Assembly: GCA_054661495.1 (NCBI GenBank)
Contig: BAAFSQ010000018.1
Span: forward strand, 30,001 to 62,000
From: Zygophlyctis sp. KS116
Lineage: Eukaryota > Fungi > Chytridiomycota
Length of the DNA: 32,000 nt
Direction of reading: 5' to 3'
Notes under the pieces: generated by a model
Seen by the model: the letters and a program-made list of their open reading frames with translations, nothing else
Told to the model about the DNA's origin: nothing
Database searches by the model: none
Made by a program: the position numbers and the translations under genes
Shown here: piece after piece, positions 453 to 15,991 of the stretch
How positions within the stretch are numbered: position 1 is the stretch's first letter
Layout of the letters: each line of letters starts with the position of its first letter

Positions 453-849
453 ATGCTGCTTTAATCTCTCAAGAATTATATCGGGACGTTTGCTCTCACT
501 GTAATGATCTCAGGGACTGATGCAGCGGTTTCATGTGATTCAAGATCTTGTCAATGCTGCTGGGTTGTCCGATCATGGCAACTGATGGGGAAAAGCACAT
601 CAGTTTCTTCTACTAGTAGCACTGCATGTTGTTCGTTGAGTGGTGTGAGCTGTTCTGGATCTTCAGTTACAGAGATTTATTGGAACTCGAAATATCTTAC
701 AGGGACAATTCCTGCAGAACTCGGAAAGTTGACAAGTTTGACTTTACTGTAATTAAGTTCCAAATTTAAAATTCATGTTATCTGTACAACAACGATCTCA
801 GCGGATCAATTCCTGCAGAGTTTGGAAATTTGGGAAATTTAGTATACCT
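453..849 (+). pseudogene. LRR receptor-like gene family member (copy A), pseudogene
   Basis: ATG453 reads MLL*SLKNYIGTFALTVMISGTDAAVSC...CCWVVRSWQLMG, colinear with the intact paralogues (28 residues to the first Cys; exon 1 453-748 is 296 nt as in copy C). In-frame TAA at 462-464. Intron 749-777 ends CATG instead of AG. The 72-nt LRR exon 778-849 (YLYNNDLSGSIPAEFGNLGNLVYL) has no following GT donor, and no TM/tail exon follows. Confidence 0.8.
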
Positions 850-1014
850 CATCATATGCCTCTAATTGCAAGGCTACAGTGGATGAAATGACCGATAAAA
901 TGAGTAAGTAACAAATTTGGAAGATATCAATACTGCTATTGATCGCTCACAAAAAAGAAAAGAGAACTACATTAAAATCCTTGCGGTCTATCGCCATAAT
1001 AACTATGCGGTATA

Positions 1015-7563: not shown

Positions 7564-10500
7564 ATGATAGGTTTTAAAACAGGATGGATAGAAAGATCAA
7601 GCAGATCAAACAGATCATATCACTGGAAAAGGTCAAGGAAGCAGAAAATAAATCCTTGCAAGTTAATTAGAATGTCCTCTACTTGGACATGCAACAAAGT
7701 TCGGAAAACATTTATTGATTATTTCTCTGGTAATGGACACACTTTTATCCCTTCATCGGCAACAATTCCATTTGATGATCCGACGCTGCTATTTACTAAT
7801 TCTGGAATGAATCAGGTAATTAAAGATCTAATCTCTAGTTTAAACCGATATTTCTAGGAACCGTTGATCCAAACTCTGATTTCTCTAAATTAACTAGAGC
7901 GGCCAACTCACAGAAATGCATTCGTGCTGGTGGGAAACATAATGATCTGGAAGATGTTGGAAGAGACACTTATCATCATACATTTTTTGAAATGTTGGGG
8001 AATTGGTCGTTTGGAAACTATTTTAAAAAGGAAGCAATTCAAATGAGTTGGGAGCTTTTGACCAAGGTTTACGGCCTTTCTCCTGATCGTTTATATGTGA
8101 CTTACTTTGAAGGAGATGCAAGTTTAAAGTTATTGCCAGATCTAGAAGCAAAACAATTATGGTTAGATGTCGGTGTGCCAGAAGATCATATCATTCCTGG
8201 TAATTCAAAAGATAACTTTTGGGGTAATCTATTATATTTTAAGTATACAGAAATGGGAGATCAAGGTCCATGTGGTCCTTGCTCTGAAATTCATTTCGAT
8301 CGTATTGGAGGTAGAAATGCCTCCTCTTTGGTAAATCAAGACGATCCAGATGTTTTGGAAATTTGGAATTTAGTTTTTATGCAATTTAATAGGGAATCAG
8401 ATCGATCCTTAAAGGCCTTACCAAACGCTCATATTGATACGGGTATGGGTTTAGAACGATTAGTCTCTGTTTTGCAGGATAAAAGATCTAATTATGATAC
8501 TGATGTGTTTACTGGGATTTTTTTTAAGATTCAAGAGTTAACAGGCGCTAGGAGTTATAAAGGTCTGGTCGGAAAAGATGATGTGGATGGGATTGATACT
8601 GCTTATCGTGTTGTAGCCGATCATGTGCGTACACTTACATTTGCACTTAGTGATGGTGGAATACCGTCAAATGATGGAAGGGGTTATGTACTTCGTAGAA
8701 TATTACGTAGAGGAGCTAGATATGTCCGAAAAAAGTTTGATGTGCCGATTGGAAATTTCTTTTCTAGATTAGCAGATACCGTTATTGAGGAAATGGTATA
8801 TTTTTATTTCTTAATTATAGGGTGGAGCATTCCCAGAATTGACAAGGCGTGTAGATGAAGTCAAGGAAATTCTTGATGAAGAAGAGAAAAGTTTTGCAAA
8901 GACTTTGGATCGTGGCGAACGACTTTTTAGTGATTATTTGGAAAAAACTAAATCTTCTGGAGCAAAGGTTATGAATGGTGCAGATGTCTGGAGACTTTAT
9001 GATACTTATGGATTTCCATCTGATTTGACTCGGCTCATGGCAGAAGAAAGCGGAATGAAAATTAATGAAGAAGAGTTTGAAAAAGAAAAAGAGATCTCAA
9101 AAGAAAAATCGAAAGGAATCAGTTCTAAATCTGGGGATGAAATTATTGCGCTGGATATTCATGCTCTGGGTGATTTGGAGAAACATTTAAAAATTCCTGT
9201 AACTGATGACAGTTTTAAATATGGTAAGTACGGTCGAATTTTATATTTAGGATCTGATGATATCGATTCCAATATTTTGGCGATTCATTGCAAAAAATCA
9301 TTTGCTCAGAACTTTAACAATCTCGAGGGTCAGCGTGTTGGATTGGTTCTTGATAGGACTAATTTCTATGCTGAATCTGGAGGTCAAACATTTGATACTG
9401 GCTCAATTACAATTGATGGAAAAGCAGATTTTTGTGTGGAAGAAGTTCAGGTATTTGGTGGATATGTTTTGCATATTGGATATCTTAAATACGGAGAAAT
9501 TGCTGTTGGGGATAAAGTGGTTTGTTCATTTGATGAGCTCAGACGATGGCCACTTCGTAACAATCATACTGGAACTCATATACTGAATTACGCTTTATTG
9601 GAAACAGTTGGATCTGGGGTTGATCAAAAAGGCTCGCTTGTAGCCCCCGATAAGCTTCGATTCGACTTTTCTTGCAAATCAGCATTAAATATTAACCAGG
9701 TTAAAAAAGTAGAGGACATAGTTAATGAAAAGATTAAGAGGAATGTTAAAGTTTACTATAAGGATATCCCACTATCAATAGCAAAATCAATATCCGGAGT
9801 ACGTGCAGTATTTGGGGAGGTAGTCTTTTATTTGTAAAAAAATAGGTGTATCCAGATCCAGTAAGAGTCGTGTCAGTTGGATATGATATTGACGAAATTC
9901 TCAAGAACCCTGCTGATCCTAAATGGTCCGATACTTCAATTGAATTCTGTGGTGGTACTCATGTTTATCAAACTGGAGATATCATAAGATTAACTATACT
10001 TGAGGAAACAAGTATCTCCAAGGGGGTCCGCCGTATTATCGCTGTAACCGGTGAAGAAGCGTCTATTTTTCATCGAATCGCAGATGACTTCCAAAAAAAG
10101 ATTTTGTCTTTGGAGAAAATGAATGGTAGTGATTTGGGCTCAGCAATAAAGAATCTAGCCAAAGTATGCTATATTTTATCATAATATTCATAGGAACTAG
10201 ACTCAACATCAATGCCTATATTGAGAAAACATGAATTGCGTGAAATGTTCACCACCATCAAGAAGAGATTTGCAGATGAAGACAAGGCACTTAAAGCCAA
10301 AGAATCAAAAGAGGTATTTAATATAGACTTAATTATAGGCGATTGAATCAATTAATAGTTATTTTGAAAAAAATCAGGATTCTTCTTTTATTGTTAAAGT
10401 GGTCTCAAAAACTGGGAATGCTAGTGCTGCTAATTCCGCGATACAACATGTTAAATCTCTTAAAGATAAAGCAGCTCTTTTCATGGCTGTAGATCCGGAA

Positions 10501-11985: not shown

Positions 11986-12159
11986 TTTTCAGCTTTGTAA
12001 ATCCTAATAATTGCTTTAAAAATTCTAATAATACGTGCTATAAAATCCTAATAAAATTCTGCGTGATTTAGACCAGACAAAGAGTTTTTAGGGAGATCAT
12101 ATACTGTGACAAATTAAATCTAGTAAAATCATTCTTCTAAACAATGACTATCAATAAAT

Positions 12160-12982
12160 TTAAAGCTGTTCGCTCTTTATAGCTAAAATTTCAGGCTGAT
12201 CACTGTTAGTCGCCTTACGTTCATAGTCATCCGTGCCTTGAGCCGTTCTCTTTTTAGCATGATACTTCTGTCTGATTTTGTAGACTATTACTCCCAAAAT
12301 ACCCAGGCCTAAAAATCCGAATCCAAGACCTAAGCCCAATTGAAAGGGCCATTCAGGGAATAATTCTCTGTTATTGTCTGCAGATTCAGTCTTTAAGGTT
12401 ATCCGTTCACGAATATCGGCAGGGATATCGCTGTATTCGAATTTATTTCCAGTTAGAGATCTATAATGTTAATTTCAACTTTCTTACATAAAAGATAATG
12501 AATCTAATTTTTTGATTTCTGGAGGGATCGGCAGTGAGAGTTGATTGTTATTTAGAGAACTAACTTTAATTTCAAATATTGTACAGGGAGGATAAATGAG
12601 GCAAATTTCCAATTTCCATGGGAATCGGGCCTGATAACTGATTTTGGGAAAGATCGCTATAATTTGACAACAATAACAATTACAGTACAGTCAAACTTGT
12701 CAAATTTCCAAGTTCTGGAGGAATAGATCCAGAAAGACGTTTATCAACCCAATATATGAAAGTAACATTGTTCTCATCAGAGCAAGTAACTCCCAGCATA
12801 TTACAACATTCAGTACTACTGCTAGAAGAAACTGTCGTAGATTGTCCCATCAATTGCCATGATCGGACAACCCAACAGCAGTCCAAAGACGTTGAATTAC
12901 AAGTTGCCTGGGCTTGAGTTCTAGCGATAAATGCAGACATAGCTATTGCTATTAAAGACTTTTTATTCCCATCAAAGATCAT
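12160..12982 (-). CDS. Plant-type LRR receptor-like single-pass membrane protein, copy B (247 aa)
   Basis: Exons 12982-12684 (299 nt), 12656-12585 (72), 12559-12488 (72), 12460-12160 (301); GT-AG introns of 27, 25 and 27 nt, all phase 2; spliced ORF is open. Signal peptide, Cys-rich cap, LxLxxNxLSGxIPxxxGNL repeats, TM LGLGLGFGFLGLGILGVIVY followed by KIRQK, tail ending PEILAIKSEQL*. Confidence 0.88.
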
Positions 12983-13040
12983 TTGGTTGGTTTTAGATTT
13001 ATTGTTAATTTCCCGGCCATAAATTAAACTTTTTTATTCA

Positions 13041-13285
13041 TTAATACTTTGTATACATCCCGTTTGCCTTTTTTAATGCCACCAATCGCTTCTTATAATC
13101 TCCACAATATCGAGTACAAAATTCATCAGGGATTTTCCCAAATTTCAGAAAAAAAACGGTAAAGTTCATCTTCGCTCGCAGCAGGAGGGTCATCTGAATA
13201 TAGTCTAAACTTCATCCAAGCCCAAATATTCTCTATAGGATTCATATCAGGACTGTAGGCTGGCCATCTGAAAACGTGACACCAA
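13041..13285 (-). mobile_element. Tc1/mariner (DD34E-type) transposase C-terminal remnant
   Basis: WPAYSPDMNPIENIW catalytic-E motif. After a frameshift near 13133 it continues IPDEFCTRYCGDYKKRLVALKKANGMYTKY* (TAA 13041-13043), the canonical Tc1 end. N-terminal part and TIRs not seen. Confidence 0.85.
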
Positions 13286-13562
13286 TAGTAGATGACGTCG
13301 TGATGACACAATACATGTAAACTTGAAGTCTTTAAGTCTTAATAGAGCATGTGGTGTTGTATAATTTGAGTTGAGATAGTAGCACTAACAACTGGCTATG
13401 TTAAAACATTGCCAAGGTTGAATACATGTTCTAAGAAAAAGTAGGTTATTGCTATAAATCCTAATAAAATTCTAGACCAGACAAAGAGTTTTTAGGGAGA
13501 TCATATACCGTGACAAATTAATCTAGTAAAATCATTCTTCTAAACAATGATTATCAATAAAT

Positions 13563-14472
13563 TTAAAGCTGTTCGCTCTTTATAGCTAAAATTTCAGGCT
13601 GATCACTGTTAGTCGGCTCACTTTGGTGCTGATCAGTGCCTTGAGCCGTTCTCTTTTTAGCATAATATGCCTTAAATTGAATAATACCCAGGCATAACAA
13701 TCCAGTTCCAAGACCCAAGCCCAATTGAAAGGGCCATCCAGAGAACAGATCTCTGTTATTGTCAGCATGTTCAGTCTTTAAGGCTATCCATTCTCGAATA
13801 TCGGCAGGGATATCTCTGTATTCGAATTTATTTCCAAATAGAAATCTATAATTTCAACATCTAACTTTCTTACATAGAAACTAATGAATCTAATTTTTTG
13901 ATTTCTGGAGGGATCGGCAGTGAGAGTTGATTATCAGCAACATCACTTTAATTTTAAATTAAGAAATAATTACAAAAATTTTAAATTAGTTAGATTCCCA
14001 ATTTCTGGTGGAATCGTTCCTGAAAGTTGATTTTTGTTTAAACTTCTTTAATATTAAATTAAGAATCATGTTACAACAAGCCCAAACTTTTCAAATTTCC
14101 TAATTCTTTAGTAATTTGTCCCGAGAGCTGATTTTGAGAAAGATCCCTATTATTTAACAACAATTATAATAATTACAGCCAATTCAAATTTGGTAAATTT
14201 CCAATTTCAGGAGGAATAGATCCAGAGAGTTTTTGATTTGACCAATCTATGGCAGTGACATTTGAACCTGTACATCTCACACCACTCATTTTACAACATG
14301 CAGTACTACTGCTAGAAGAAACTGTCGTAGATTGTCCCATCAATTGCCATGATCGGACAACCCAACAGCAGTCCAAAGACGTTGAATTACAAGTTGCTTG
14401 GGCTTGAGTTGCAGCGATAAATGCAGACATGGCTATTGCTATTAAAGACTTGCTGGGCTTAATAGAGATCAT
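13563..14472 (-). CDS. Plant-type LRR receptor-like membrane protein, copy C (264 aa)
   Basis: Exons 14472-14177 (296 nt), 14146-14075 (72), 14045-13974 (72), 13945-13874 (72), 13845-13563 (283); introns of 30, 29, 28 and 28 nt, all phase 2, GT-AG. Same architecture as copy B with one more LRR exon and a TM/juxtamembrane segment 6 aa shorter. Confidence 0.88.
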
Positions 14473-15529: not shown

Positions 15530-15991
15530 TTATTGAGCTACAGCTTCTCCTTTTGGAATGATATCAGAATCCCCACCATCAATAATAGATAAAATACCAA
15601 CTCTAAAGTATTTACCACAAGCAGTTCCTAGATCGATATTGTTTCCAGAGTAGTGATGTACACCAGTCTTTGCAAGCATTGCATAGTATTCAATTTCTGA
15701 TTTTCTTAGAGGGGGACAATTTCCAGCAATAAGAATCAATTTAGCTAAAAGATTAGTTGTAAGAAACTTTTTCAGAATTAGATGCAATTTCGTTCCACAT
15801 TTAGTTCAGAACAGGTCTGAAAATATAATCATCACAAAAAGTTGTAAAAAATTACCTTTTCCTGATCTAATAGTCTTTAGAGTAGATTTGTATCCTAGAG
15901 AATATTTTCCAGATTTGATTGCAAGCGCAAGTTTTGAATTTATAGATTCTTGAGACTTTTTAATCTTTTTTGGTGGAGCCGTCGGTGCCAT
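15530..15991 (-). CDS. RPL30: 60S ribosomal protein eL30
   Basis: [25 protein letters not shown] | [24 protein letters not shown]...[12 protein letters not shown]; single 111-nt intron 15855-15745. Confidence 0.97.
15765..15843 (-). ncRNA. Intronic box C/D snoRNA, U25/SNORD25 (yeast snR56)-like
   Basis: C box GTGATGA (15835-15829), guide CAGACCTGTT (15819-15810) directly before D' CTGA (15809-15806), terminal D box CTGA (15775-15772), flanking stem AACTTTT/AAAAGTT. The guide complements conserved SSU rRNA AACAGGUCUG. Confidence 0.85.

Follow-up and report, generated by a model that had tools for sequence, protein, structure and literature searches.

Tandem cassette-built LRR genes of a freshwater zoosporic fungus as a predicted membrane-anchored subtype of a large extracellular LRR family

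According to comparative genomics, fungi lack classical LRR surface receptors almost entirely, and only single cases are known from chytrids and zygomycetes (PMC2939053). Two neighbouring genes in the stretch of DNA analysed here (the window, 32,000 nucleotides in length) encode small plant-style LRR proteins. An earlier note on this DNA had described both genes as intact, as built from one-repeat-per-exon cassettes of 72 nt and as encoding a signal peptide, a Cys-rich cap, LRRs of the plant-specific type, a transmembrane (TM) helix and a short kinase-free tail, and it had proposed a modular, diversifying cell-surface recognition system of a zoosporic fungus. The host is a flagellated, early-diverging fungus: the best named matches of eIF2B-alpha are chytrids and other early fungi (45-52%), and a radial-spoke head gene is present.

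Gene models and predicted protein anatomy

Both genes were modelled twice independently, by anchoring on intron sequences and by phase-aware dynamic programming, and the two routes gave identical results (Table 1). Removal of the seven introns, all of which are bounded by GT..AG and lie in phase 2, leaves in-frame coding sequences of 744 nt for gene 1 and 795 nt for gene 2, each closed by a TAA stop, and all five internal exons measure exactly 72 nt. In the motif LxxLxLxxN, each intron interrupts the codon of the Leu at position 4. The introns of gene 2 are 30, 29, 28 and 28 nt long in gene order, and the donor of the second intron of gene 1 is of a type found in only 2 of 102 family introns. 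The tandem gene pair with its cassette LRRs is real and looks intact, as had been claimed, and judged from its sequence it would represent a receptor-like-protein-style subtype with a function predicted on the same basis.

Table 1. Features of the locus in window coordinates
Feature	Position	Strand	Description
Third family copy	465-862	(+)	cap exon lacking a signal peptide and a proper start; one LRR cassette
Gene 1 3' flank	12030-12159	(-)	82% identical to gene 2 3' flank (13433-13562)
Gene 1	12160-12982	(-)	247 aa; signal peptide, Cys cap, 4 LRRs, TM, 39-aa tail; 4 exons, 3 introns
Gene 1 exon 1	12684-12982	(-)	299 nt; signal peptide, six-Cys cap (CCWVVRSWQLMG ... CC.M.GV.C), LRR1
Gene 1 intron 1	12657-12683	(-)	27 nt, GTAATT..TATAG, phase 2
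Gene 1 exon 2	12585-12656	(-)	72-nt LRR cassette
Gene 1 intron 2	12560-12584	(-)	25 nt; atypical GTAC donor
Gene 1 exon 3	12488-12559	(-)	72-nt LRR cassette; orthologue is gene 2 exon 4, 85% nt identity
Gene 1 intron 3	12461-12487	(-)	27 nt, phase 2
Gene 1 last exon	12160-12460	(-)	301 nt; degenerate LRR4, juxtamembrane region, predicted Gly-zipper TM helix, basic stop-transfer
Transposase remnant, Tc1/mariner type (DDE_3)	13041-13311	(-)	between gene 1 and gene 2
Gene 2	13563-14472	(-)	264 aa; layout of gene 1 plus one extra 72-nt cassette; 5 exons, 4 introns
Gene 2 exon 1	14177-14472	(-)	296 nt; signal peptide, cap, LRR1
Gene 2 exon 2	14075-14146	(-)	72-nt cassette
Gene 2 exon 3	13974-14045	(-)	72-nt cassette
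Gene 2 exon 4	13874-13945	(-)	72-nt cassette
Gene 2 last exon	13563-13845	(-)	283 nt; LRR5, TM, tail

The end of the duplicated unit is recognizable from the 3' flank of gene 1, and the third copy at the beginning of the window is probably a relic. Within the transposase remnant that separates the two genes, the ORF at 13126-13311 matches PF13358 (E 5e-8), and the adjoining ORF at 13041-13193 is known from the ORF list alone. An intron of the same tiny class as those of the two genes also interrupts the alanyl-tRNA synthetase gene of the window, at 8796-8820.

Signal peptides and TM helices were assessed by hydropathy (Kyte-Doolittle, 19-residue mean, usual threshold 1.6) and by simple rules. 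In both genes the predicted signal peptide consists of a basic start, a hydrophobic core of 12-14 residues and a cleavage-type motif, AQA/T, and the cap that follows carries six Cys, at 28, 35, 36, 59, 60 and 67. The predicted TM helix of gene 1 has a mean of 2.26 and contains overlapping GxxxG motifs followed by KIRQKYHAKKR, and the tail encoded by the same exon ends in SDQPEILAIKSEQL; the corresponding segment of gene 2 is 6 residues shorter and, with a mean of 1.59, borderline, just below the threshold. Both tails measure 39-40 aa and are kinase-free, the last exons being blank in Pfam, and the Pfam scan of single exons gave no matches, as expected for such short pieces. Each ectodomain contains three N-x-S/T sequons. 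Between the last LRR and the TM segment no Cys was found in gene 1, and the sole Cys of gene 2 lies inside the TM segment. Hydropathy and alignment support the anatomy that had been read from the bases, with a borderline TM helix in gene 2.

The consensus LxxLxLxxNxL(S/T)GxIPxxLGxLxx defines the 24-residue plant-specific LRR class. When a profile of 27 cap exons (genes 1 and 2 and 25 other family members) was compared with the PDB, the top matches were plant LRR-receptor-kinase ectodomains only, and cap positions 51-98 aligned to the CxWxGVxC N-cap and LRR1 of FLS2, RGI, GSO1, PEPR1, ERL1 and SERKs. This alignment is weak (best single stretch E ~0.02, 25-40% identity over 40 residues, half of the cap), the same search found no plant counterpart of the first half of the cap by sequence, and Pfam LRRNT_2 did not match the cap exon at E<=1. 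An AF2 model of the cap consists of a helix, then strands, with which Foldseek matched plant ectodomains, but at E>=0.1 and with none at E<=0.001; the nearest cluster in the ESM Atlas is streptophyte LRRNT_2+LRR_1, a weak agreement. The label 'plant-style' is apt as a description, given that all top PDB matches are of this kind and that the second half of the cap aligns to their N-cap.

The family across the genome and among relatives

The two genes are part of a large family, matches to the gene 1 cap exon numbering at least 92 in the 12.7-Mb genome; the earlier count of two is right for the intact genes and has to be widened by these cap copies and by the truncated third copy in the window. 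The family is characterized by the cap motif CCW(V/A)(V/I)R.W.LMG ... CC..GV.C with LRR cassettes of 72 nt behind it, and both window genes align along the whole cap. Searching 28 loci (68 kb), we counted 139 phase-2 LRR exons of 72 nt between AG and GT, against 0 in shuffled sequence, which extends the strict cassette rule of the two genes to the family at large; the consensus of all 139, genes 1 and 2 included, is xLxxNQLSGSIPxxIGNLxNLxx, in agreement with the plant-specific class. The introns between family cassettes (n=102) are 24-31 nt long, and the normal introns of the host genome measure ~25-30 nt. An in-frame stop is present in 101 of the 102 and a length that is not a multiple of 3 in 79, which together with the uniform tiny size argues that these introns are real.

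TM-anchored members are a small minority of this family, about 5 of at least 92 (genes 1 and 2 and the paralogues C778, C406 and C852), and the TM tail exon has 5 matches only in the genome. In at least 14 other members a Cys-rich domain forms the C-terminus and a TM helix is missing, so that they look secreted; endings modelled as 'short/other', many of them probably contig ends or modelling failures, were left uninterpreted. C778 and C406 model as proteins of 430 and 434 aa with a signal peptide, the cap, 12 LRRs, a Cys cap (C..C) and a TM helix, and they share the juxtamembrane motif G.G.GFG.LGL..KIR(Q)K with the window genes. Relatives of the TM tail were found neither in a set of 5.8 billion proteins (55-173 aa range only) nor in JGI contigs, so that its function is not transferable from anything known. 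Among 145 Pkinase matches in the genome none lies downstream of a cap match on the same strand, and the genome yielded no LRR-kinase partner from the cap-LRR family. The tree of cap sequences is poorly resolved, with one starred branch only. The proposed surface-receptor system is narrowed to a predicted anchored subtype within a family of which at least 14 members lack a TM helix.

Relatives also occur as intronless ORFs of 273-783 aa in the JGI contig series Ga02552xx/Ga02562xx and in two ENA runs, and cassettes with introns are found in the contig series Ga0315905/6 and Ga0164294/5. Five of the intronless-type contigs retain one intron of 29-32 nt (GTAA..AAAG), exactly at the predicted phase-2 position. 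Judged by this structure rather than by sample metadata, the intronless-type environmental contigs, which stem from a related taxon, are probably RNA-derived, and relatives of genes 1 and 2 are, on the same structural grounds, probably spliced and expressed. Two of the transcript-like JGI contigs, L053 and L069, are at most 84% identical to G000 at the DNA level, L053 has only exon 1 in common with the genomic contig L050 (95.6%), and no exact cDNA/gDNA pair was found among the transcript-like and genomic contigs compared.

Divergence, proposed role and alternatives

Divergence between genes 1 and 2 is mosaic. The first 200 nt of exon 1 are 88% identical and the flanks 82-88%, whereas the middle cassettes resemble each other only as much as cassettes drawn at random from the family; dS is 0.13-0.21 in the cap, the last cassette and the tail and 0.5-1.2 in the middle. 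For the cap, a dN/dS of 0.34 shows purifying selection; the sole orthologous cassette gives a dN/dS of ~1.5, a value derived from 2 synonymous and 9 non-synonymous changes. Among the 139 family cassettes no near-identical donor was found for the middle ones, the best matches (47-50 of 72 nt) being at background level, and recent shuffling into genes 1 and 2 is therefore unsupported. Cassette entropy peaks at repeat positions 1, 3, 4, 22 and 23, which form the concave strand next to the introns, and strain variants from other lakes show non-synonymous changes at strand positions of LRR1 and LRR2. Between C778 and C406 the LRR exons (61-78% identical) are less conserved than the introns (72-97%), a difference that is to be read against a background intron identity of already 74% and may be due in part to constraints that splicing imposes on tiny introns. 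The diversification that the earlier note had suspected is thus visible both in the variable concave-strand residues adjoining the introns and in diverged middle cassettes between well-conserved flanks.

Our preferred reading, which we consider fairly probable, is that the tandem duplicates of this freshwater zoosporic fungus represent a rare form with a membrane anchor within a large extracellular LRR family that is lineage-specific, and that they have a role in binding or adhesion. The spliced product would be a type-I membrane protein with a small, N-glycosylatable ectodomain, composed of the family-specific Cys cap and 4-5 LRRs of the plant-specific type and approximately of the size of the SERK/BAK1 ectodomain. 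It would be anchored by a glycine-zipper TM helix and end in a short basic tail devoid of an enzymatic domain. Its likeliest role would be cell-surface ligand binding or adhesion, for instance in the recognition of host, substrate or non-self, and signalling would be possible only via a partner, plausibly recruited by the glycine zipper of the TM helix. In the germline, whole 100-nt units of exon and intron would be gained, lost and replaced, with the frame kept throughout because all cassettes share the length of 72 nt and phase 2; in the concave beta-strand, the residues adjoining the introns would change fast; and terminal exons, encoding either the TM tail or the secreted Cys-rich domain, would recombine with different caps. 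If the proteins are located on the surface of zoospores or sporangia, they would be concrete candidates for chytrid recognition of host, substrate or non-self, and this long-standing question would become directly testable. A more far-reaching version strikes us as speculative and rather unlikely: the anchored members (genes 1 and 2, C778, C406 and C852) would act at the cell surface as one arm of an innate recognition system of the fungus, bind either ligands or secreted family members loaded with a ligand, and signal via a partner recruited by the glycine zipper, as an independently assembled analogue of plant RLP/SOBIR1/BAK1 complexes whose repertoire is renewed by the turnover of cassettes and perhaps also by their alternative splicing.

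It is unlikely, in our view, that genes 1 and 2 are instead young pseudogenes, duplicates that are silent or in decay at a site disturbed by transposons and whose intact frames are left over from a recent duplication. Such a history would be in keeping with the transposase remnant between the genes and the truncated copy in the same window, with the weakened TM segment of gene 2 and the atypical GTAC donor of gene 1, and with the in-frame stops seen in some transcripts of relatives (L054, L067). In addition, a search of sequencing runs gave no RNA run with the locus. However, none of the seven splice sites and neither frame is disrupted despite a dS of 0.13-1.2 between the copies, and the cap evolves under the purifying selection described above. 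The locus exists in nature, as contigs covering it are present in four freshwater DNA metagenomes from three studies, data that bear on presence and strain variation rather than on splicing, and divergent strains from other lakes have kept it, with synonymous and non-synonymous changes and with indels only in introns or flanks.

We regard it as quite improbable that the proteins are effectors or decoys that mimic the ectodomains of host LRR receptors, as proposed for fungal secreted sLRR proteins, and not the fungus's own receptors. Plant-like LRR proteins that are secreted and that act as suppressors of plant immunity are found across fungi, and an example from Globomyces was chosen for testing (bioRxiv 10.1101/2025.08.22.671746); the members of the present family that lack a TM helix and end in the Cys-rich domain, at least 14 in number, and the lake-dwelling organism, which may parasitise algae, would suit such a role. 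For genes 1 and 2 themselves, the predicted TM helix and the hydrophilic tail of 40 aa argue for a product retained on the membrane of the fungus.

Very unlikely, too, is a scenario in which the symmetric cassettes serve combinatorial exon skipping or somatic rearrangement and provide many receptor isoforms per gene. Skipping of any 72-nt phase-2 exon would leave the frame intact, and alternative splicing of LRR exons of this kind has been reported for brown-algal ROCO genes (PMC11378527). Against this, 25 transcript-like contigs of relatives were either completely spliced or retained one intron, no two isoforms differed by a cassette, and the 2-3 internal cassettes of genes 1 and 2 would allow few isoforms. 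A clean cassette-skipping joint was likewise not found in DNA contigs from four metagenomes; the sides of the joints there are short (25-47 nt), and the joints look like paralogue chimeras. The earlier statement that any exon can be skipped, duplicated or swapped in frame is correct in that the symmetry preserves the frame, while no evidence of skipping or of any somatic or combinatorial mechanism was found, the transcript-like contigs of relatives showing intron retention only.

Recent acquisition from a plant or alga by horizontal transfer is highly improbable: best solved-structure matches that are exclusively plant LRR-RK ectodomains, the streptophyte nearest cluster in the ESM Atlas and the occurrence of one LRR per 72-nt phase-2 exon in plant SERK and ERECTA genes as well would speak for it, but the match to the plant N-cap is weak, covers half of the cap and comes without LRRNT_2, the introns belong to the tiny class that is the host's own, protein P0023 (NCBI source) combines an analogous cap with LRRs of the same type, and the cap also occurs in many environmental relatives and in the chytrid Globomyces pollinis-pini (KAI8896052.1), which argues for a wider distribution.

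Comparison with known systems

Considered as an anchored subtype of a fungal LRR family, the predicted proteins resemble plant RLPs (Cf-9, CLV2, TMM) and SERK/BAK1 in their signal peptide, in an N-cap whose terminal CC.x.GV.C-type motif can be aligned to CxWxGVxC, in 24-residue LxxLxLxxNxLSGxIPxxIGxLxx repeats, in a single GxxxG TM helix and in a short basic tail without a kinase, and their ectodomain of 4-5 LRRs is like that of SERKs. They differ from plant RLPs in having a cap whose first half (C..CCWVVRSWQLMG) is specific to the fungal family, with LRRNT_2 undetected, and in that genes 1 and 2 have neither an island domain nor a C-terminal Cys-pair cap, of which C778 and C406 possess the C..C; compared with Cf-9 and CLV2 they also contain far fewer LRRs (4-5 versus 20 or more). 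The match to the Cf-9/CLV2 class drawn in the earlier note is overstated, as the many LRRs, the island domain and the C-terminal Cys cap are all absent. Unlike plant LRR-RLKs, the genes encode no fused cytoplasmic kinase, the tail ending after 39-40 aa. The host here is a fungus, and homology to the plant proteins is unproven beyond the generic LRR fold.

Within the Chytridiomycota, LRR expansions (PMC13618815) and secreted plant-like LRR proteins (bioRxiv 10.1101/2025.08.22.671746) have already been reported. Our family is similar to these in its high copy number and in its plant-like LRR ectodomains with signal peptides, and Globomyces pollinis-pini KAI8896052.1 contains related cap-LRR modules. 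The published families differ in that automated annotation labelled them as LRR-RLK or secreted sLRR, and neither report describes exon cassettes, a CCWVVRSWQLMG-type cap or TM-anchored kinase-free forms (PMC13618815; bioRxiv 10.1101/2025.08.22.671746). The LRR expansions and secreted LRR proteins of chytrids were thus known, while the cap, the cassettes and the anchored forms go beyond these two reports. What is added is a freshwater zoosporic fungus with a small genome that carries at least 92 predicted extracellular LRR genes, a handful of which have the full receptor-like-protein layout.

The cassette design itself is not new. In the brown-algal LRR-ROCO genes each LRR occupies its own 72-bp exon and all introns are in phase 2 (Teng et al. 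2024, PMC11378527), and shuffled LRR exons in these genes are attributed to Zambounis et al. 2012, as cited in PMC11378527. There, as in the fungal family, exon numbers vary among paralogues, the concave face holds the residues that are variable or positively selected, and recognition repertoires have been proposed (PMC11378527). The algal proteins differ in being cytoplasmic LRR-ROC-COR GTPases with another LRR consensus and ordinary-sized introns (PMC11378527), whereas the fungal ones are predicted to be extracellular or membrane-anchored and have LRRs of the plant-specific type and introns of 24-31 nt with conserved sequence. No ROC-COR domains follow the LRRs in the two genes, whose last exons encode the predicted TM helix and the tail and contain no Pfam domain, and alternative splicing of cassettes has been shown for the algal genes (PMC11378527), whereas contigs of the fungal relatives gave intron retention only. 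The 72-nt phase-2 cassette design is now seen together with introns of 24-31 nt that are more conserved than the exons, and the fungal family would provide a clean natural example of repeat-protein diversification by germline cassette turnover, in parallel to the brown-algal ROCO genes.

Gene models, splicing and source organism

Two genes lie on the minus strand at 12160-14472, of which the ORF list picks up the first exons alone. When GT..AG introns of 27, 25 and 27 nt are spliced out of gene 1 and of 30, 29, 28 and 28 nt out of gene 2, open frames of 247 and 264 codons result, and the same exons were recovered identically by an independent phase-aware modeller. Each of the five internal exons measures 72 nt, and the seven introns are all in phase 2, each cutting the same Leu codon (4th position of LxxLxLxxN). 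Both proteins start with a signal-peptide-like sequence (a basic residue, a 12-14-residue hydrophobic core and AQA followed by T) and a cap, the family-specific Cys-rich N-terminal region, with six Cys residues (28, 35, 36, 59, 60 and 67). One LRR is encoded in exon 1, one in each 72-nt exon (hereafter cassette) and a degenerate one in the last exon, giving four in gene 1 and five in gene 2. Each protein has three N-x-S/T sequons and a glycine-rich hydrophobic segment, then a basic cluster; the 19-residue Kyte-Doolittle mean makes the transmembrane (TM) call strong for gene 1 (2.26) and only borderline for gene 2, which has a segment six residues shorter and reaches 1.59. The C-terminal tail of about 40 residues was without a Pfam domain in the Pfam scan, bearing out its earlier description as kinase-free. 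Since the frames are open after splicing and follow the 72-nt/phase-2 rule, the anatomy given in the earlier note is correct.

Coordinates of features in the window, in contigs of the KS116 genome (C numbers) and in family loci (L numbers)
Feature	Sequence	Coordinates	Strand	Remark
Gene 1	window	12160-12982	-	247 aa
Gene 2	window	13563-14472	-	264 aa
Cap core, genes 1 and 2	window	12840-12933, 14344-14437		
LRR intron with consensus	window	13946-13973		one of several
Transposase fragment	window	13041-13311	-	Tc1/mariner-type DDE_3, separates genes 1 and 2
Third family copy	window	465-862	+	
Alanyl-tRNA synthetase intron	window	8796-8820	+	25 nt
Ribosomal protein L30 gene intron	window	15745-15855	-	about 111 nt, unusually long for this genome
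Cys-rich C-terminal domain	C543	408-998		sequence match
Cys-rich C-terminal domain	C300	296-811		sequence match
Cys-rich C-terminal domain	C406	3811-4323		sequence match; 11 more places
Recurring cassette pair	L004 (C778)	845/946, 1247/1348	rc	
In-frame stop	L054	265-269		first LRR
In-frame stop	L067	231-235		first LRR

The reality of the introns in genes 1 and 2 was judged from comparative evidence. The cap exon of gene 1 has 92 matches across the 12.7-Mb genome, so the family-size check by cap that had been proposed finds more than these copies alone. In 28 family loci (68 kb) we counted 139 exons of exactly 72 nt that are AG/GT-flanked, open in phase 2 and carry the LRR motif at a fixed offset, while shuffled sequence yielded none. 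The 102 introns separating adjacent cassettes are 24-31 nt long (mode 28-29) with mostly GTAAT donors; 101 contain an in-frame stop and 79 have a length that is not a multiple of three. The intron of the alanyl-tRNA synthetase gene belongs to the same tiny class, and its removal yields a continuous Pfam-profile match for that enzyme.

Among 1.8 billion proteins, a profile search picked out the full-length relatives P0108, P0129 and P0125, each a single intronless ORF on a contig of about 2 kb. Scanning JGI contigs with the cap profile gave 28 loci, cleanly divided by sample series: Ga0315905/6 and Ga0164294/5 contigs show a short cap ORF and then intron-bearing 72-nt cassettes, and those of the Ga02552xx, Ga02562xx and Ga0180032 series mostly hold ORFs 183-783 aa in length that run through as many as 18 contiguous LRRs, without cassette-flanking AG/GT. 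Seven further contigs of the latter series have one break each (a retained intron or an in-frame stop). In five intronless-series contigs a single 29-32-nt intron (GTAA..AAAG) is retained at the predicted phase-2 site, and its excision restores the frame. From this contig structure we infer that the Ga02552xx, Ga02562xx and Ga0180032 contigs are RNA-derived, some of them partly spliced; because their DNA identity to the KS116 genome is at most 84%, they come from a related taxon, not from this strain. On this reading splicing and expression are shown at the family level, in relatives, and are predicted for genes 1 and 2. The stops in L054 and L067, transcript-like contigs of relatives, are not caused by intron retention and may reflect expressed pseudogenes, sequencing errors or read-through.

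That the organism is a probable chytrid was well founded, as a zoosporic, chytrid-like fungus is indicated by three observations. The best named matches of eIF2B-alpha from the window are early-diverging fungi (Basidiobolus, Rhizophlyctis, Gorgonomyces, Entophlyctis and others; 45-52% identity), with no sequenced close relative among them; the presence of a gene for a radial-spoke head protein (E 2e-88) shows that the organism is flagellated; and the locus is present in freshwater and lake metagenomes from several studies.

Predicted membrane-anchored and secreted members, and likeness to plant ectodomains

The last exon, encoding the degenerate LRR, TM helix and tail, matches only five genomic places: genes 1 and 2 and, more weakly, one each on contigs C406, C778 and C852; relatives of it were found neither in the public protein set (55-173-aa length window) nor in JGI contigs. 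Genes on C778 and C406 model as 13-exon proteins of 430 and 434 aa with signal peptide, cap, about 12 LRRs, a C..C cap, a TM helix (Kyte-Doolittle 2.3) and a short tail, and share the motif G.G.GFG.LGL...KIR(Q)K with gene 1. A Cys-rich C-terminal domain without TM helix occupies at least 14 genomic places and is also found in P0108 and most transcript contigs. It spans about 170 aa (...VCGCA...DCLN...CG.W...; residues ~430-590 of P0108) and has no matching Pfam family. Given five TM-tail matches against at least 14 places with the Cys-rich domain, the TM-anchored genes are a minor subtype within a family whose members are predicted to be mostly secreted. The receptor-like-protein type assigned earlier therefore fits the layout of genes 1 and 2 but describes a minority of members. 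In the genome, none of the caps is followed on its own strand by a kinase domain, and hence this cap-LRR family contains no receptor kinase. On the cap-exon tree the five TM genes do not form one group, a single well-supported branch forcing at least two changes on an otherwise unresolved tree; this scatter would fit terminal exons recombining with different caps.

Other arrangements were also seen. The third copy in the window, a cap exon without usable start or signal peptide and one LRR cassette, is probably a truncated relic. Some relatives (L052 and L076 from JGI contigs, and P0027 from Globomyces pollinis-pini) string two to six complete cap-LRR array-C-cap modules per protein, so the cap is not exclusively N-terminal, and in the KS116 loci L036, L037, L039 and L042 it is preceded by mucin-like or Cys-repeat regions.

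The cassettes share the consensus xLxxNQLSGSIPxxIGNLxNLxx, that of the 24-residue plant-specific LRR class. Top PDB matches to a profile of 27 cap exons are plant LRR receptor-kinase ectodomains alone (RGI, FLS2, GSO1, PEPR1, ERL1/2, HSL1, TDR, BRI1, PSKR and SERKs), and profile positions 51-98 align to the plant N-terminal CxWxGVxC cap and first LRR (e.g. FLS2 36-75). The cap stretch alone reaches E ~0.02 against these ectodomains, the repeats inflating whole-protein E-values, and the cap exon had no match to LRRNT_2 in the Pfam scan. Its AlphaFold model is moderate (pLDDT 81-85 at residues 31-70), with a helix at 33-44 and then strands; Foldseek again listed plant ectodomains, but at E>=0.1, and the nearest ESM Atlas cluster (streptophyte LRRNT_2+LRR_1, 0.91) is a lead only. 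The chytrid Globomyces pollinis-pini has related cap-LRR modules in its protein KAI8896052.1, and the protein P0023 has an analogous cap ahead of the same LRR type. Our reading is that the family is a lineage-specific variant of a widespread LRRNT-capped ectodomain with plant-specific-type LRRs: 'plant-style' describes it fairly but gives no evidence of a plant origin.

Divergence of the repeats and conservation of introns and cap core

Genes 1 and 2 are a tandem duplication whose unit begins at the start codon and reaches some 130 nt beyond the stop, gene 2 having one extra cassette. They are 88% identical in the first 200 nt of exon 1 (dS 0.17 for the cap), 85% in the last LRR cassette (dS 0.13), 82% in the last exon (dS 0.21 for the juxtamembrane part) and 82% in the 3' flank; dS is 0.5 in the LRR1 part of exon 1. 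The middle cassettes are 61-65% identical (dS 1.2 between the two exons 2), equal to the family background of 62.5%. This mosaic suggests either that the flanks were homogenised or that the middle was replaced, and no recent donor for the middle was found among the 139 cassettes. In the single clearly orthologous cassette all amino-acid changes fall within the set of repeat positions 1, 3, 4, 22 and 23 (dN/dS ~1.5, on small numbers), and these positions also have the highest entropy family-wide and are the concave-strand residues flanking the intron. Variants of gene 1 in two other lake metagenomes are non-synonymous on LRR1/LRR2 strand positions and synonymous in the cap.

LRR introns average 74% identity family-wide versus 62.5% for exons, and between the C778 and C406 paralogues LRR exons are 61-78% and the intervening introns 72-97% identical. 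The intron consensus, GTAATTATTTTCTAAATTTAAAATTAAAG, derived from KS116 loci L003-L043, was absent from housekeeping-gene introns within the window. Together, the mosaic, the variability at the five positions, the lake variants and the exon-versus-intron divergence point, at the sequence level, to germline diversification of a binding face on a conserved scaffold. The modular, diversifying system proposed earlier is upheld as far as germline divergence at concave-strand positions goes, but nothing indicated exon skipping or somatic rearrangement.

In the gene at locus L004 two consecutive cassettes recur about 400 nt on with identical peptides, which marks a block of four cassettes as recently duplicated in tandem within this gene. 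In the cap core, about 30 nt encoding W-V-V-R-S-W-Q-L-M-G have nearly invariant synonymous sites (across 35 cap copies, Val GTT 33/33 and GTC 30/31, Arg CGA 30/32), the codons are identical in L044, a transcript of a related taxon, and metagenome contig depth is ~27x that of the flanks. Such a pattern could stem from gene conversion, or from a function of the nucleotide sequence itself as an RNA or DNA element.

Overall reading and known systems

The observation of two cassette-built LRR genes is confirmed, and its first interpretation is partly supported. We consider it reasonably probable, ahead of other readings, that the genes encode functional LRR proteins which sit at the surface in type-I orientation and serve in extracellular binding or recognition. 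Any signalling by their products would proceed via a partner, and diversification would combine germline cassette turnover with selection on the binding strand.

When 49 fungal genomes were surveyed, LRR receptors proved almost wholly missing; Batrachochytrium and two zygomycetes were the exceptions, with single TM-LRR proteins (PMC2939053). In a Lobulomycetales genome (2026), LRR-RLK-labelled orthogroups are top in abundance and common to other chytrids (PMC13618815), and secreted plant-like LRR proteins across fungi, Globomyces included, have been described as host-receptor mimics (2025 preprint, bioRxiv 10.1101/2025.08.22.671746). Brown-algal LRR-ROCO genes have 72-bp phase-2 exons with exon shuffling, concave-face selection and alternative splicing, and vertebrate gonadotropin receptors have phase-2 LRR exons (PMC11378527). 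The cassette principle is thus already published for the brown algae; the novelty lies in three features occurring together, namely a fungal extracellular LRR family bearing this cap, its construction from tiny-intron cassettes, and a membrane-anchored, kinase-free subtype within it.
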